DNA from: Paragordius varius
Lineage: Eukaryota; Animalia; Nematomorpha
Assembly (NCBI GenBank): GCA_964247055.1
Contig: OZ176052.1
Location: 9,920,001-9,984,000 of the forward strand
Length of the DNA: 64,000 nucleotides
Direction of reading: 5' to 3'
Below are positions 12,741 through 22,900 of the stretch, one piece after another. The notes under the pieces were generated by a model. The model worked only from the letters and a program-made list of their open reading frames with translations, made no database searches and was not told the DNA's origin. Each line of letters starts with the position of its first letter. Position 1 is the first letter of the stretch. The translations under genes and the position numbers were made by a program.

Positions 12741-15700
12741 ATGTCAAATAATTATTTTAAATTCAATTTTGCGAAAAAATTCAAACACTGCCCAGAAAAA
12801 ACATCAGAAATGAATAATTTCGTTAATTACTTTACTAAAATTGGAAAAAGTGTCAATATTATAAATATTGTTGGATGAAAAGGTTTCAATTTAAATAACA
12901 AACTCAAGTCACAGAATGCTAAACCCCAGGGAAGAGTCTGTTAGATAATGAATACAACGATTCGATAAAGGTGCCCATACAAATTTCGATCATAACCAAC
13001 TTTTATTGAGTGATATCCAAAAAGATTTCCATAAATAGAGAAAGCAAAAAGAATATCGGAAGATATTCTCGTATCATTTGGGGGTCAGTTGAACTCAAAC
13101 TCAATAGATAGTGAAAGGGAAAATGTTGATATCCTTAAAACCAATACGGATATAAGAGACGCAACTATTTTTCAAGACACTGATGCACCAAATTTAGAAA
13201 AGGAAGGCCACTCCTCAAATAACGAAACTAAAGCATATGTCACCAAATCATTTAATAAGGGTGATCTGAGTGAACGAATAAATGATACTTCAGAAATGCA
13301 AAGGCGTACAACATTAAAAAACAAATTTGTCCGAATGTTCCATAAAACTCCAAAAGATGATATCAAAAATATATCAACTAATGCAGCGGAAATTAAAAAT
13401 ACTTTTGCATATATGGGCAGGGTGACCAGACGTCCCGCTTTTTCACACTTTGTCCCGCGTCCCGCTACGTTTTTGAGTCCTGCTTTTTCACGATTATATT
13501 AATATTTTTTTTTAAATACATTTAAATTTTTTATAAAAAATTTATTTTTTTATCCAATTTTTTATCATTAGTTTTGTTTAAAATTTATATCAATTTTAAA
13601 ATGAAAATTTATTATTTTTAAATTTAAAATATTTATTTTTTTTGAATTTATATCAACATTATAAAAAAGACAAATTAATACCAAAATCGGTAGCACATAG
13701 CCGCAAGCATGATATTACAAAGCATATAGAAAGACAGAAACATAAAAAATGTTTAGATATGGCGGCATCATCTTACAAAATGATCGATTTTTATCTAAAA
13801 ACCGCTTTTGGAGAGGAAGAAGAGATTCGGCACTAGTAGAAGGCGTTTTATCTTCTCACGCCGTTAATCACAATCATTCTTATAGATCTATGGATTGTAC
13901 CTCACAGGTTATTCGTACCTTATTCAATAAAAAAATTTTATGTGCCCCATTGTATTCAATGTCCTTTCGCCACATGCATTTTCTGAAATAAAAAAGATTT
14001 GCTAAAAATTAATTTCATATCGCTATACTTTGATGCATCAAATCACAAGGAAACAAAATTATTTCCCACTTTAATAAGATATTTTGATCCAACCGGAGTA
14101 AAAATTAAAATTTTAGATTTCATATCTCTAAAAACAAAATCATCGCATATTGCGCTGACAACACCAATACGAACTTCGGTGGAAAATCAAGGAGGGGAAC
14201 AATAAAAATTTTCATAAATTAGCAGGTAATCATAATCAAACATTTATGGCGTTGGGTGTGCAGTGCATATAATACACAACGCTATTCAAACAGCTGCTGA
14301 TTTATTACCCCTAGATGTTGAAATGTAGTTCTTAAAATATATTCCTTTTTTATATAAACACGGTACGCTTTGAAACGCTCAAGGAATTTTGTGAAAATGC
14401 ACAAGTTCAATATCAAAAAATGCTTGGATATTGTAAAACTCGTTGGTTAGCTCTTCTGCCAACTGAAAGAATTTTAAAAATGAATGATCCTTTAAAATTC
14501 TATTTTTTATCACAGCACAAATGTTTTACAACTTTGTAAAAGTTTTTTAAAAGTGATTCTTCAAAAATATAATTAGAGTTTTTACATAATCAAGCTTCTC
14601 TCAAAATGTTATAAATTGTTAGAAGGTGACAAAATATTGGCAATCGAAGTAGCCAAGGAAGTTAGTAACCTAAACTTCCAATTTCAAGAAAGGTTAAATT
14701 TTAATTAACCATCCGCAATATTATAAATAATTTAGAAAAACAAGGCTTCATAAATCGTCAAGATATCCTGTACCATATAAAAATGTTTTATACAAACTGT
14801 ACAGATGATTTGGAAGACTGGACGATGCAATTCAATAAAATTGATCATTTTCATTGGATAACATTAAAACCAGAATATAATTGGTGCGATGTTCAAAAAT
14901 CATTTGATCTGCATCTCCTAAAAATTCCCAAAAAGTAATCTTTTAGAAAATGATCTTTTTTTGAAGTATAGTTCAAAAATATATTAATAATGAAAAACTT
15001 AAATTATGGCAACAGAAAAAAATACAGTAGAAAAGAAATGGTTATAAATATTTCATCATTTTGAAACAAACTATGTTCTAAACAATAATTTTAAAAATTT
15101 TAGAATTAGCACTATCTTTGTTTGGAACTAACGCTGCTATTGAGCGCGTTTTTTTCCACAGTAAATCAGGTGTGGACATCGGAAAAATCAAATTTAAATG
15201 TTGAAACTTTAAAGGTTATTTATCTGTCAAATATAATTTGCAAATTCTGAAGACTCTACAACATTTTAAAAAATTATGACAATCTGCTAAAACGCATTCA
15301 CTCAAATTAAAATATTTTCTTATATTTTTAAGTATTTGTATTAAAAATAAATACTACAATAAATTTTTTGAAACATTTTTGGTTGCCCCCGCCCCCCTAT
15401 TTCAGATTTGTCCCGCTTTTTCCTTCAAAAAATCTGGTCTCCTTACTTATATGGGGAAAGTAAAAGTTAAACAACTTCTTGGCATATCCAACAATAAGGA
15501 GAATTTAGGCGGAAAAAATTCTTGCGAACTTTCAGATAATGTTAACAATAAATTTTTCAGCCCAGTTCTGATTCAACCTTTAGCAGGTGATATCAAAAAC
15601 AAATTAAAAGCAGATATTGTCGAAATCGGAAATACAATGAAAATTCAGAACCGTAAAACACTCATGCATAAAAACTTTTAAAAAGGCAATCCAAAATGAT

Positions 15701-16121: not shown

Positions 16122-17389
16122 AGCGTTGCTGTGTTTATTTAATCAAAATTCGGTGAAACTACTTAACATAAAATATTATCAATTTTGTATATTTATCATT
16201 TATTTGATATCTTCATAAGCTGCCAAAAATTGCTTTTAGTTTTAGTATTTAAAAAGTGTCTCCACCAACGTCATATTTACTGTAAATAGGTTGGAAAATT
16301 ATTTAAAATAGATTATAATATATGACCTTTAAAGATCAACAATAAACAGAATTATGGTATTTACTAGTTATCTATCCAATAATGTTATATTAGTCATTTT
16401 TAGCAAAAAAAACATTTATTGTGACACAATATAATAATCTAGGAAGCATTTACAGGATAACAGCTAGGTCAAATCAGAAAATCTATCAAATCTTGATTGG
16501 CTTCTATGCCTAAATATCGTAATAGTTTGAGTCAGTTATGAAGTATACTAACTTATTGAATAAATCCGCTAATTACGATTCTTTTAAAGTTTAATGTGTT
16601 TGGTATAAAATACTTTTTTTAATCATTTTCATGTTACAATAAACAATATATTTTTTGAATCTTCCGATAAAACGTTTTTAAAAACTCCCAACACAGAATA
16701 GGGATACATATATATTCCCGAAACGGCTCTCTCTAGATCAACCAAATATTTATTATCTATTTAGGATGGACAGGTTATAATTTTAAATATTGGCATATTG
16801 GATTGGGACCCGGTTAATTTTATTTTTGACGATATATACTTATTCACCGAGTAAATTTTTTTTTAACAATTTTTTTATCAAAACCTTTTTAACATTGTAA
16901 CACGATAGTAATTCAAATAGTTTCTGAAATTTTGGTAAAACGGGTATATAAAGAGTAATTATGAAGATTTGATGCAAAATTTTGTTTGAAGACAATTAAT
17001 AATTATAGTAAAATTTATATTTTTAAAATCCTTCAAACTCGTCAACTACCATTACCTTACAAAAAAATTATATGAAATAATTCTAGCCAAATATGAATGA
17101 GATTAAAATTAAAAATATCTTGAAAACCATGGAAACGATTTTCAAATATTTAGAATGTTGTCTCTTTATTCAAAAGTTAATTGATCCCAATCTTATCGTT
17201 AAACCCAAGACAAATTACACAATGACCCTGCACCTATAGTGCCTCGATGTCTTTCAAATGGATTGATTAAGATGGGCGCAAAATAACGGTTTTAATGCCA
17301 CAATAAAACTATAAAGAATTTTCTAAACACTTAAAATAATGGAATATTTAAAGTTTTTTAATTATGTTGTATATTATATAATTTATTTA

Positions 17390-17852
17390 TTAAACATTCG
17401 CAGAAGCTTCTTGAGAACGTAGGCGAGCATGTTCATTTGTAACTTTTATAGCAAGTTGCTGAGCACGTTCAACAATTTGTTTGCGTTTAAGGGCAGAGAC
17501 GGCATGCGCTATTTCAGCACAGTAAGTTTTGTTGTGCATCATAAGCACTTCCAATTCCTGAAATAAAAATTGCAAATTTTACTTTAACATTATTCACTAA
17601 AACTTTTCTGAATCCTGAAGGTAACATATGCTTGGTTCTTTTATGGCTCCCATAACCAACATTTGGCATCAACTTTTGTCCTTTAAAGCGTCTGCGGACA
17701 GGATTATCAATACCTTTTGGTTTTCTCCAATTAGGCTAATATTATATATTTATAAATACTTTCAATCTTTTGTACCGATCACAATGATGACGGGTAAACT
17801 TATTTTTCTTCTTCTTGACAATGTTGTATTTTTTTGACGGATGGAGAGCCAT
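17390..17852 (-). CDS. RPL32: 60S ribosomal protein L32 (eL32), 137 aa
   Basis: Exons 17852-17760, 17735-17583, 17557-17390 give [31 protein letters not shown]|[51 protein letters not shown]|[55 protein letters not shown]. Introns are 24 and 25 nt. Confidence 0.97.
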
Positions 17853-17881
17853 AATTAAATAAGTGAACTCAGCTGTTTTAA

Positions 17882-18384
17882 ATGCCTAAAATACGATTCA
17901 AAAATCCGCCGCCAGAAGGGTGGGATCTGATTGAACCAACGTTGGATGAATTAGAATGTAAAATGCGTGAAGGTACTAATATTTATAAAATTTTAGCGGA
18001 AACTGAATCCCATGAAGGTAAAAGAATAGTGGAATCATTATGGCCCATCTTCAAAATTCACCATCAAAAATCTCGTTATATTTACGACCTTTACTATAAA
18101 CGCAAGGCTATATCTAAAGGTTTTTTATCATTATATATTAAAGAATTGTATGATTTTTGTATTAATGAGAACATTGCAGATAAAAATTTGATTGCAAAAT
18201 GGAAAAAGCCCGGGTACGAAAATTTATGCTGTCTAAGATGCATTCAAACAAGGGACACAATTTATGGAACAAATTGTTTATGCCGAGTTCCCAAAGACAA
18301 ATTAGAATTAGTAATCATATTGTTTATTATTAGGGTAAAATTGTCGAATGCGTTCAATGTGGCTGCCGTGGCTGTTCTGGATAA
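17882..18384 (+). CDS. BUD31: BUD31/G10 splicing factor, 143 aa
   Basis: Exons 17882-17972, 17997-18119, 18144-18310, 18334-18384. Removing 24, 24 and 23 nt GT-AG introns restores the canonical MREAETE, KAISKELY and [20 protein letters not shown]-stop. Contains [14 protein letters not shown]. Confidence 0.97.
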
Positions 18385-19932
18385 TATGATTTTATTTATG
18401 TAAATAAATTTTAATAATTTAACTTTCTTATTCTCTTATAATAAAATCTATTATTTTAACATGCAAAAATCAAATATTTTATTTTAAACTATAAGTAAAA
18501 TTAATAACCATAGCTCGCGATGGCTTTTCATCCATTGTTTTCTTATTATTTAAATGTAATAATTGATGGTATAGGGTAAATGTATTCAAAATGTGGTTTA
18601 GTTGGGACCATTCATATATAATTATATGTATTTAAAACAGTAGTTTTTTTAAAAAAATATTTGTTCAAGTGAATATCATAAATTATATACATGACACATG
18701 AACACTTGAAGAAAAGCTTATAATAATTTTAAATTCTCTTTAAATAGCGATTAACATTTAATTCTGGCTGAATAATAATATATTTTTGACGATATATTTG
18801 ATTTTTATGCCTTTATATAAATTTTTGTTTAAAAGTTGTTTTTTGATAGTCACAACCGGGGGCATCAACCCTAGTTTGCATGAGTTTATTAACAATGCAT
18901 TATGTTAACCCATTTGTGAATGCATGATCTTAGATGTGGAGTTAACTTTTAATTTTTTGGTTTTTCATTAGCTTTGTATCAAGGGTTCGTTTTACAAAAA
19001 ATCTAAATGTCATAAATGATTGTAACTTGTATTGCAATTATTTTTAATATAACGGAATATATGGATCATTATCCGCATCATGATTTTTTCAAAAAAAACC
19101 TTAAAATAATTTTAATTTATTAAATATATAATTAGTAATATTCTAGAAAAATCAATAAAGATTATCTAAATCTATTTTTGTTTAATATTTTGTTCATTTT
19201 GAGAATCGCCTACAACCCACAAATCAATAATTTTATGATGAGGTATTCTCAACTTTAAACAATCATAATTTAATAATTAGAGCTTTATTTGAAAATCGGT
19301 AAGGGCATGATGGCAAGCATAAGCCAATATTTCATAGCCGACGTTTAGTGAAAGCTTATCATGAGGTAAATCCCATGTAGGCCATATCGCGTTTTACCTG
19401 TATCTAGGAAGGGCTTGGGTTAAAATGCATATATTGATAACTGACCTGCGTTTATGTCATTTTTTAAAACATAATACTTTCCGAAATATATAATAATTTA
19501 AATGTAATATGTAAAATTTTTTATCATTTTCTTCTTATTATTATAAACAAACTTAATTAGTAAATTTTGCTTTTTTATAGGCATGCCCCTTTTCGAATTA
19601 GAGCTTAAAAAAATATTTTTTGCAAAATCTAACCTGTGAATTAATTTGTGGGAATTATTTTTTTAACAAATTATTACAAATAAGTATAATAACATATCTT
19701 ATAAGTAAGTAGGAAAAAATAAGTATAATCTGTCGTATATGAATCTAAACGAAATTAAATAGTATATAGCGATTCTAATGGTCAAATAAAAACATCTTCA
19801 TTTATTTAAAATTCGTCCATATAAAAACAATGTATAATAATAATTAATATATGTGATATTAAAATCCAATTTGTTAAAATAGAATGTTGTTGTAATCCAT
19901 ATAGTTTCTCAAATAGAATAGGTTTCATTGGT

Positions 19933-22900
19933 TTATTTCTTTTTCTTGACATTTTTACGCTTCGGAATTTTAGTCTAAATCAATATAATATAAATTAAAA
20001 TAGGCTGCGTTCAATTTATAAAAATAAATTAAAAAATTAATTATCTCTTTGGGTTGTTGACGCTCCTCAACAACAGTAAAAATTATAAAAACGAGTTTTA
20101 ATATATAAACGGTTGATTTGCTGATCATTTGCATAGGCACTTTTAAAAATATTATTTACAATGCTTAAATACATCTTAAACAACAAGAATAAAGATGTTA
20201 CATTGGTTATCTATCATTTAAGAATATTTGATTGCTTGTAATTATTGATAGTACCCTATGAAAATGCTATAAATTGTATGATGAATCACTCATAAATTTT
20301 TTGTTGTCCGAACAAAAAAAATATACCCAAGTGTTATCAGTTGAAGCATTAATTGGATTTTCGGATAATTTATCCATAATTGCATCATTTTCATTGTCAT
20401 AAACCGGAATTGACTGATCTGTGTTTTGACTAGCTTTATCCTATAGCAAAAATAATAAAATTATAACATATAATATAATCTTATCCATACAATAATATCG
20501 AATTTCGAAAATATAAATAAATCAACGAGAAGGTAGAAAACAATATTACTCCAAATCGGAAATTTTATAAGGCTAATACTTTCTCATTTCCGTGCTTTTA
20601 TTATTGTGTAATTGGGTTTCAAATGTTAAAGTATTTTTATTTAAGGCATTAATAAACTGTAAAAAAAGACATTCCAATATATAAATTTAAGAGGTAGGAA
20701 TCTTATAATATACAAATAATTTTTTAGTTAATGCATGATACTATTATTCGTTCAGAAATGAAAAGCTCCAAATTACAAAATTCATACTTAAAACTATCTT
20801 ATAGTGAGTGACTAAATTACATTAACGTATTTTATCTTTGCATTCGTATGTTGTTAATAAATATTTTATTAGAGATATCCCTTACTCCCTAAAATTGAGA
20901 GTATAAACCAGTTAAAAAAACAATTAATGCAAAATAATCTTAGAAAAAAATAAACGTATTAATTTTATAAGGGATTAAGTAGGTGTAATCTGTTTTTGTT
21001 AGCTACAATAACAAGTAGGAAAAAGCAGCGATATTAATATTTTTAATTCAATATTTAATATAACATAAAAAACTCATGCACAAAGGAATCTATATATTTA
21101 TAATGACTAGTAGAAATAACCAAACTTGAGCAAATAGTAACTAATTTATAATTATAAGCAAGATGATTGATTCAAATGGCTTTAACATCTAAAAGAACAA
21201 AAATAAATGACAGTAAAACTATCACATTATAAATATGCGTAGGATCGTGTTAGAAGACACACACCCAAAAATATGAATATATTATCTTTTTAAGAAAATA
21301 ATAAAATAATTTTCGTTAAATATTCAAATTAAAAGATTAAATATTACATAATCTAAAAATATTTTTTTATTAGCCCTTAATTACATTTGGGATTTCCTAG
21401 CCCAGGCAATTTTATATATAACACCGATGATATGGGCATCTAAAAATATCATGGCCTTTATAGAAAAAACATCTCAAACTATTCCCCCAAATATTTGTCA
21501 TTGTTTTATTTATTGGTAAAAAAAACTAAAAAACAAAAGTAAACTAGAAAATTTGAAATACCCTAACTATTATGCAATTTGACTGCAAATATTGGCAAAT
21601 TATTAATATTAAAATCGACTATTTGTTTCGGATTCAATAGTAATCAAGTAGGATTCAAGTTACAAAAATGTAATAAATAATGCATTTTTGTTCAAAATAT
21701 TTATAATTATACAAAATGAGTTTTAGAAAAAAAATTTTATAGCACTGAGTAGCCCCAATATATATGTAAAATTTTATATAAATTTATACTTTTGCTTTTT
21801 TCTTTTCCGAAACAGTTTGGGTACCTTTTGAATGTTTGTTGATCACAGATTCAATATCTTGACTATTCTAAACAATTATAAATACATATTAGTAAATCGA
21901 AACATTATCAAGTGCATAATTGTCAATTTTTTCTAATTATATTACTATTTAAATGAAATATTTACAAATGAAATTATTATATAGTTTTAACCACTAATTT
22001 CTTTATTCCTAATTTAATAATTTTAAATAAATTTAAAAATGTCAACACATGAAAGGAAGCGAAATAAGGAGGAAACCGATTTAGGGGTATTTGGTAGACC
22101 AGATTTCGCAATTGCACATTTTGTTGCTTTTGAACTAGATGTAGTTTTCACATTATCACTAATTATGGATGAAGTTTCACTCGGGGTCGTAATAAAATCA
22201 TTGATATCTGTCCCATCCAAAACAATAAGGTTCTCATTGTTTTTGTTTAATGCAGTTCCTTTGTTTTTCTTTTTCTTCTTTTTACTGACTTCTTTGATGG
22301 CAGGCGAAGCTATAACCTTTTTTACCGGCAACGAATGTTCTGGAAAGATTTTGATTAATTCTTCATGCAATTGATTAAATAGTTCCGTAATATGTGTTTT
22401 GGGTTGGTTTGCCAAAACATTTTGTTTTGTATCCTCAAGTGGTATATTCTTAAACGAGCAAATTAAAATGTTAGATAACCTTAAACTATTAGCCTTATTA
22501 TTCTCATCACCGGAAATACCTGAAACTGTTTGAGCCAAATTTTTTCCATCCAACGAAATTAGAGGACAATCAACATTTATTGCACCATTAAACAGTAAAT
22601 ACACCAACTCTAACAGCGTAAATTGAGGACTGAAATCCAGGTTTTCCGCATTATCACGCAATAATTGATTTAAATGTTCGATATAAAAGGTGGTTACTGG
22701 ATCATGTGAGTGTTTTATATCTTGGCGCTCTTTTAAATATTTTACTATGGACTCAAAATCAAACGGTGGCGGTGTAATTTTTTTCTCTATGTTTGGCAGT
22801 GAAGCGGTCAAAGCCGGTTTAAATATATCAGTCAAGGAAAGTTTATGTAAATCTACTGGAACGTTTTCCGTCAAATTTCCAAACTGTATTTGATGAACAT

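Follow-up and report, generated by a model that had tools for sequence, protein, structure and literature searches.

The window analyzed here, a stretch of 64,000 nt from the hairworm Paragordius varius, harbors the ribosomal-protein gene RPL32 and the splicing-factor gene BUD31 in a head-to-head, divergent arrangement, RPL32 on the minus strand with its ATG at 17852-17850 and BUD31 on the plus strand with its ATG at 17882-17884. The two start codons are separated by only 29 nt (17853-17881), a spacing that had already been noted in the first-pass annotation of this DNA and that holds upon reading of the sequence and construction of the gene models (Table 1). RPL32 comprises three exons and encodes 137 amino acids, BUD31 comprises four exons and encodes 143 amino acids, the spliced frames of both are open over their full length, and all five introns measure 23-25 nt. 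Exons 2 and 3 of RPL32 match the eL32 family (PF01655) at 80 and 55 bits, respectively, above the gathering score, and the N-terminus is conserved, as residues 2-31 encoded by exon 1 align to residues 2-32 of eL32 chains in solved structures. Similarly, exons 1-3 of BUD31 span positions 1-128 of the BUD31/G10 profile (PF01125), and exon 4 encodes the Cys-rich C-terminal end CGCRGCSG. Since the alignments of both first exons set in at the N-terminus, the two ATGs correspond to the conserved N-termini of the proteins. Upstream of either start codon, no in-frame ATG, GTG or TTG occurs before a stop codon is reached.

Table 1. Position of genes, introns and candidate promoter elements around the RPL32-BUD31 spacer (numbering of the window).
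Feature	Position	Strand	Basis
RPL32 exon 1, 31 codons from ATG	17760..17852	-	Aligned to eL32 residues 2-32 of solved ribosomes
RPL32 intron 1, 24 nt, GT..AG	17736..17759	-	Gene model
RPL32 exon 2	17583..17735	-	PF01655, E 1.9e-22
RPL32 intron 2, 25 nt	17558..17582	-	Gene model
RPL32 exon 3 including stop codon	17390..17557	-	PF01655, E 1e-14
Spacer between the two start codons	17853..17881		Sequence, gene models, bridging DNA contigs of two samples
TTCACT, candidate RPL32 initiator, A(+1) at 17864, 12-nt leader	17862..17867	-	Motif enrichment; initiator role predicted
TCAGCT, initiator-like, candidate BUD31 start, A(+1) at 17871, 11-nt leader	17869..17874	+	SF3B6 TCAGTT in matching position; role predicted
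CAGCTG palindrome	17870..17875		Sequence
Candidate 22-nt GT..AG micro-intron in RPL32 leader	17873..17894	-	Sequence; chance ~0.1-0.25 (estimate)
TATTTTA, weak TATA-like, ~30 nt upstream of candidate RPL32 start	17887..17893	-	Sequence; spacing predicted
CCCACCCTTCT, best TOP-like tract upstream of RPL32, then GGCGGCGG	17914..17924	-	Score 14 vs control median 3
BUD31 exon 1 from ATG	17882..17972	+	PF01125 profile positions 1-32; 81% identity to Gordionus BUD31 exon 1
BUD31 intron 1, 24 nt	17973..17996	+	Gene model
BUD31 exon 2	17997..18119	+	PF01125, E 6e-14
BUD31 intron 2, 24 nt	18120..18143	+	Gene model
BUD31 exon 3	18144..18310	+	PF01125, E 3.4e-25
BUD31 intron 3, 23 nt	18311..18333	+	Gene model
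BUD31 exon 4 including stop codon	18334..18384	+	Sequence and gene model

Pfam searches of the 110.6-Mb assembly revealed that each of the two families matches this locus only. Since both genes are intact, single-copy and possess conserved N-termini, we infer that both have to be expressed from here. Of five sequencing runs that contain this stretch, the three aligned to it proved to be DNA, with even coverage of the non-coding flanks and without joints across any intron. The spacer is crossed by contigs from two DNA samples, X1 (17632-17898) with no difference and X3 (17374-18132) with 4 differences to the window. This excludes an assembly collapse, which the first-pass annotation had considered as one way in which the close spacing might turn out to be spurious. 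A further concern raised there, that either protein might in fact initiate at a downstream ATG, is not borne out either, as initiation at the following methionine would cost BUD31 27 and RPL32 52 conserved residues. Given the conserved N-termini, the open, full-length spliced frames, the single copy of each family in the assembly and the bridging contigs, it is extremely improbable that the arrangement is an artefact of a misplaced start codon, a defunct gene copy or an assembly error. A low-depth contig carrying a second organism label (X5) joins position 17394 to 18793 and omits nearly exactly the RPL32-BUD31 island. The shorter side of this join consists of only 21 letters, and a chance join in AT-rich DNA is possible; if real, the join would mean that the island is absent from this site in a relative.

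The tight packing is local. Together, RPL32 and BUD31 fill 1 kb (17390-18384), and no open reading frame of at least 90 amino acids occurs within about 1.7 kb to the left and about 3.6 kb to the right of the two genes, while Pfam searches with the neighboring long open reading frames identified only a GPCR and a fragment of a nuclear receptor, neither of them of relevance here. The genome as a whole is very AT-rich. At 15401-15452, the window contains a short stretch with runs of C residues in which the word depth reaches about 160,000-230,000 in two DNA runs, compared to about 400-1000 in the flanks, and at which many contigs break; it looks like the end of a repeat of very high copy number. 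At the other end of both genes, an AATAAA is located 2 nt past the stop codon of RPL32 (17382-17387) and 18 nt past that of BUD31 (18403-18408). Thus, the 3' untranslated parts are probably very short as well, and the predicted transcripts of both genes appear to be minimal at both ends.

The arrangement of RPL32 and BUD31 is real and unusual, and for the underlying mechanism we put forward a proposal below. Being divergent and having only 29 nt between their ATGs, well below the 1 kb between 5' ends that delimits bidirectional-promoter pairs, the genes have the layout of such a pair, and both would be transcribed from the shared region. As had been argued before, 29 bp are too small to hold two conventional core promoters together with two ordinary leaders, and wherever the start sites fall, the DNA up to about 35 bp from them lies in the first coding exon of the partner gene. 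It is therefore quite probable that promoter DNA of each gene resides within the coding exon of the other, a feature shared by the two readings weighed most closely below, start sites within the spacer and overlapping start sites. The center of the spacer is occupied by the palindrome CAGCTG, which, as described in the first-pass annotation, provides an AG on both strands, at a distance of 9 nt from the start codon of BUD31 and of 20 nt from that of RPL32. At the density observed in the window, about 0.001-0.002 occurrences of CAGCTG are expected in a given interval of 29 nt; its enrichment in the 64-kb window is not significant (6 sites versus 2.8 expected), and the adjoining 200 kb show no enrichment either. 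Together with its flanks, the palindrome matches 9 of 10 positions of AWCAGCTGWT, Ohler motif 5, the E-box of Drosophila housekeeping core promoters, and a factor may bind this site symmetrically.

For comparison, 14 ribosomal-protein genes were identified by Pfam searches of the assembly, and their ATGs were set by the conserved N-termini. In most of them, a C-rich pyrimidine tract is present within 30 nt of the ATG, the median score of the best 10-nt tract being 9.5 compared to 3.0 in 350 control windows (p 1.4e-5). The tract often directly abuts the start codon (RPS26, RPL37A, RPL19, RPL21, RPL34 and RPL37), and C-rich tracts 0-12 nt before the ATG were found for RPS26, RPL37A, RPL19, RPL37, RPL34, RPS24 and RPS8; examples are TTTCCTCACCTC (RPS26), CTTCCTATCCTC (RPL37A), TTTCCCTT (RPL19) and TTTCCTC (RPL21). 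The position of these tracts suggests that leaders are generally very short. As ribosomal-protein genes without a close neighbor also keep the tract near the ATG, short 5' regions appear to be a habit of this genome rather than a consequence of crowding. A purine occupies position -3 in only 8 of 16 starts, as would be expected if the context of the start codon matters little. In RPS26, RPL37A, RPS24 and RPL37, an intron of 24-25 nt immediately follows the ATG, and RPS6 and RPL19 possess an intron of about 22-23 nt after one or two codons. In these six genes, the first coding exon thus extends little beyond the start codon.

The spacer of RPL32 lacks such a C-rich tract. The only pyrimidine tract there is TTCACTTATTT, and the tract score is 6. 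The earlier statement that the spacer contains no TOP tract therefore stands with respect to C-rich tracts, but has to be qualified, as the spacer does contain TTCACT, a word that is enriched upstream of the ribosomal-protein genes. TTCACT is the most enriched 6-mer at positions -60 to -1, occurring in 5 of the 14 genes against 0.14 expected (p 3.7e-7), and the enrichment persists if RPL32 is not counted (4 of 13 genes, p 1e-5). The word starts at -32 in RPL21, -32 in RPL19, -29 in RPL13, -53 in RPS17 and -15 in RPL32. The probability of its occurring by chance in a 29-nt spacer in the direction of RPL32 is 0.004, and it is located one base from TCAGCT, which faces BUD31.

Similar spacing in other housekeeping pairs had been named as a point worth checking, and a second pair of this kind was found. 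On contig C6, near 7929139, RPL21 on the minus strand (start codon at 1854) and SF3B6/p14 on the plus strand (start codon at 1911) are likewise placed head to head, with 56 nt between the ATGs (L040:1855-1910); the identity of SF3B6 is based on Pfam and on a match to solved p14/SF3B6. This spacer contains TATAAAA, TTCACT and, on the opposite strand, TCAGTT. The order of elements is the same in both spacers, the reverse complement of TCAGYT being followed by 1 nt (RPL32) or 2 nt (RPL21) and then by TTCACT, so that the A residues which are candidates for +1 are 6 nt apart in the RPL32-BUD31 pair and 7 nt apart in the RPL21-SF3B6 pair. For the latter, the candidate leaders would measure 29 and 20 nt. 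By a hand estimate from the frequency of TCAGYT, the probability that this placement matches by chance in the second pair is about 7e-4. In both tight pairs, the partner of the ribosomal-protein gene encodes a small protein of the spliceosome, BUD31 or SF3B6. A de novo scan for tight divergent pairs of open reading frames in 264 kb returned similar counts for the real and the reversed sequence; the scan was noisy and missed the true pair.

Our best, albeit tentative, reading of these findings is that RPL32 and BUD31 share a minimal bidirectional promoter whose core, the 29-nt spacer, contains two initiators arranged back to back. The usual initiator of animals has TCA at its core. Transcription of RPL32 would start leftward from the A of TTCACT at about 17864, and that of BUD31 rightward from the A of TCAGCT at about 17871, with 6 bp between the two starts. 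The mRNA leaders would be only about 12 nt (RPL32) and about 11 nt (BUD31) in length, and translation would commence at the cap-proximal AUG with little or no scanning. The upstream promoter DNA of each gene would be written in the first codons of its partner; one candidate is the word TATTTTA, which is the opposite strand of BUD31 codons 2-4 and belongs to a type of word common in AT-rich DNA. We infer from the sequence that these words act as start sites, and likewise how long the leaders are and how translation would proceed. Upstream ATGs are present at -33 and beyond in SF3B6 and at -41 in BUD31; both lie outside the candidate leaders and limit an ATG-free leader to no more than this length.

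Several findings weigh against this assignment or narrow it. A genome-wide search for CTGA-N(1-2)-TTCACT gave 153 matches compared to 123 in the reversed control and hence no enrichment, and support for the composite element thus rests on two loci. As a side observation, the listed sites of CTGA-N-TTCACT carried G at the free position (14) about as often as A or T and much more often than C (3), in spite of the scarcity of G in this genome. Since TTCACT is positioned at -29 to -32 in three other genes compared to -15 in RPL32, it may represent an upstream element and not an initiator. In addition, the spacer of RPL32 is devoid of the C-rich tract typical of most other ribosomal-protein genes. 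In the animals studied, leaders of 11-12 nt are poorly translated unless they provide a TISU-type context (PMC2518114), and neither start codon has such a context beyond the ATGGC of RPL32. It might further be speculated, with considerable doubt, that in this hairworm lineage housekeeping genes including those for ribosomal proteins are run from minimal modules of back-to-back initiators with starts 6-7 bp apart, that mRNAs by default have leaders of about 10-30 nt and are translated from a cap-proximal AUG irrespective of its context, and that upstream promoter words reside in the first codons and the first micro-intron of the partner gene. A regime of this kind is known in some protists, and we know of no description from an animal.

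As the main alternative, which we consider somewhat less likely, each message might start within the first coding exon of the partner gene, so that the 5' ends of the two transcripts overlap on opposite strands. RPL32 would then be transcribed from the TOP-like tract CCCACCCTTCT, which is located inside BUD31 exon 1, 62-73 nt before the RPL32 ATG, and its leader may lose the 22-nt micro-intron, while the start of BUD31, located within codons 1-4 of RPL32, would be at most 40 nt upstream of the BUD31 ATG. The score of the tract (14) is at the level of the best tracts of ribosomal-protein genes, it resembles the RPS24 tract CCCACCATCTTCC, and no ATG is present on the RPL32 strand over 161 nt upstream of the RPL32 ATG. 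Within BUD31, the corresponding stretch consists of rare GC-rich codons where Gordionus uses AT-ending ones, codons 9-16 (17906-17929) forming a cluster CCG CCG .. GGG .. CTG; however, the tract follows in part from the conserved PEGW of BUD31, whose codons are rich in purines on the sense strand, and in other ribosomal-protein genes the tract resides within 30 nt of the ATG and not at a distance of 62-73 nt. At position 17927, two read sets of organism A have a T, which changes CTG to the common TTG. The candidate micro-intron, which comes after the tract, runs across the start codon of BUD31 on the other strand and terminates at the palindromic CAG, so that RPL32 could have a short non-coding first exon overlying codons of BUD31 and a leader intron 20 nt from its own ATG. 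It has GTA..CAG ends, and its length is within the range of 22-29 nt of the micro-introns of this genome, but a GT..AG pair 22-27 nt apart has, as an estimate, a chance of roughly 0.1-0.25 to occur in this DNA. In vertebrates, the first exon of RPL32 is non-coding, and an intron is located about 19 nt ahead of the start codon. Overlapping starts would leave both the pairing of TTCACT with TCAGCT and its recurrence at RPL21-SF3B6 unexplained.

Two further layouts would bring the 5' ends to the spacer by splicing. One of the genes, most plausibly RPL32, might possess a distant non-coding first exon beyond its partner and a long intron in the 5' untranslated region that contains the whole partner gene and ends at CAG. 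An A/T-rich stretch does precede the CAG on both strands, but the minus strand at 18385-20500 has no C-rich tract with a score of at least 11, the TTTCCT/TTCACT words at 19716, 19352 and 18673 are not followed by a GT within 30 nt, and the plus strand offers no candidate for BUD31, which makes such a nested layout improbable. Nematodes, the usual sister group of the hairworms, trans-splice nearly all mRNAs for ribosomal proteins, and transcription starting anywhere upstream followed by joining of a common capped leader at the AG of CAGCTG would similarly account for the spacing, as both strands offer this AG, at 9 and 20 nt from the respective ATG. The 14 ribosomal-protein genes, however, have no fixed position of an acceptor or AG before the ATG; as read by eye from the sequences, RPL21, RPS26 and RPL37A have no AG within the last 25 nt, and Gordionus BUD31 has none within the last 40 nt or so. 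The Rfam model for SL1 gave no match in the genome, which is uninformative since control genomes were equally empty, and the 5S genes are dispersed and have no linked leader-like gene in common. A role of CAGCTG as a shared splice or spliced-leader acceptor, as the first-pass annotation had suggested, is therefore not supported, and we regard trans-splicing at this site as quite improbable. For RPL32 alone, the CAG may serve as the acceptor of the candidate 22-nt GT..AG micro-intron. The 5S rRNA matches numbered 20 on contigs C3, C4, C5, C6 and C8 and did not form one head-to-tail tandem array; six of them reside within about 25 kb on C4 in both orientations. A literature search retrieved no paper linking Nematomorpha with spliced leaders, trans-splicing or gene spacing.

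The closest named relative in the comparison, Gordionus sp. m RMFG-2023, has an RPL15 that is 83% identical and BUD31 exons that are 81-85% identical. Its BUD31 is a gene of 4.7 kb, the divergent neighbor of which, 392 bp upstream, encodes an RRM protein, and no RPL32 was found within 8 kb. Thus, the adjacency of RPL32 and BUD31 is not conserved between the two hairworms. Protein searches with BUD31 and RPL15 identified no transcript-derived protein of P. varius or a close species and no hairworm transcript contig. In the protein collection, the top BUD31 matches were at most 76% identical; one of the entries, P0033, was rejected as a relevant BUD31 transcript protein, as it is the intronless BUD31 of another AT-rich organism.

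If the start sites are in fact located in or beside the 29-nt spacer, abundant animal mRNAs would carry leaders far below the length with which the scanning model is comfortable, and promoter elements would be written into conserved coding exons. This raises the questions of how small a two-way RNA polymerase II promoter can be and whether cap-proximal initiation can be a default in a metazoan. For such questions the locus is well suited, as both genes are tiny and essential and RPL32 RNA is expected to be very abundant.

Several known systems resemble parts of this arrangement. Like animal housekeeping genes with bidirectional promoters, RPL32 and BUD31 are divergent and have a single short upstream region in common. 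Published head-to-head pairs are defined by a distance of less than 1 kb between start sites, and their spacers usually comprise hundreds of bp (PMC1796892, PMC2713978, PMC3091781). In RPL32-BUD31, in contrast, it is the start codons, and not just the start sites, that are 29 bp apart, and kilobases of non-coding DNA surround the pair. Genes with a TISU element are housekeeping genes whose leaders have a median length of 12 nt and whose AUG is cap-proximal, the element acting in both transcription and translation; they amount to about 4% of human genes and depend on a defined context around the ATG (PMC2518114). Compared with the TISU consensus, RPL32 has only ATGGC in common with this context and BUD31 nothing, and while TISU is restricted to this small fraction of human genes, short 5' regions appear to be widespread in the hairworm genome. 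Most ribosomal-protein genes of this genome recall the TOP/TCT-initiator promoters of their animal counterparts in having a C-rich pyrimidine tract shortly before the ATG, but here the tract is located 0-12 nt from the ATG and not 30-50 nt upstream, and the RPL32 spacer lacks it. With the outrons and SL1 of nematodes, the locus shares an AG within a few bases of the ATG, and this would spare the gene a leader of its own; here, however, neither a leader gene nor a consistent acceptor was found. The Drosophila E-box, Ohler motif 5, is paralleled by the CAGCTG palindrome at the center of a housekeeping promoter, and differs in that CAGCTG is not enriched in the window. In Giardia and microsporidia, initiator-like words are located near the ATG, leaders range from a few to about 15 nt, and transcription proceeds in two directions from a short A/T-rich region. 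The genomes of these organisms are compact throughout, whereas RPL32 and BUD31 belong to an animal genome of at least 110 Mb with non-coding flanks on the kilobase scale, in which tight packing is confined to the starts of genes.
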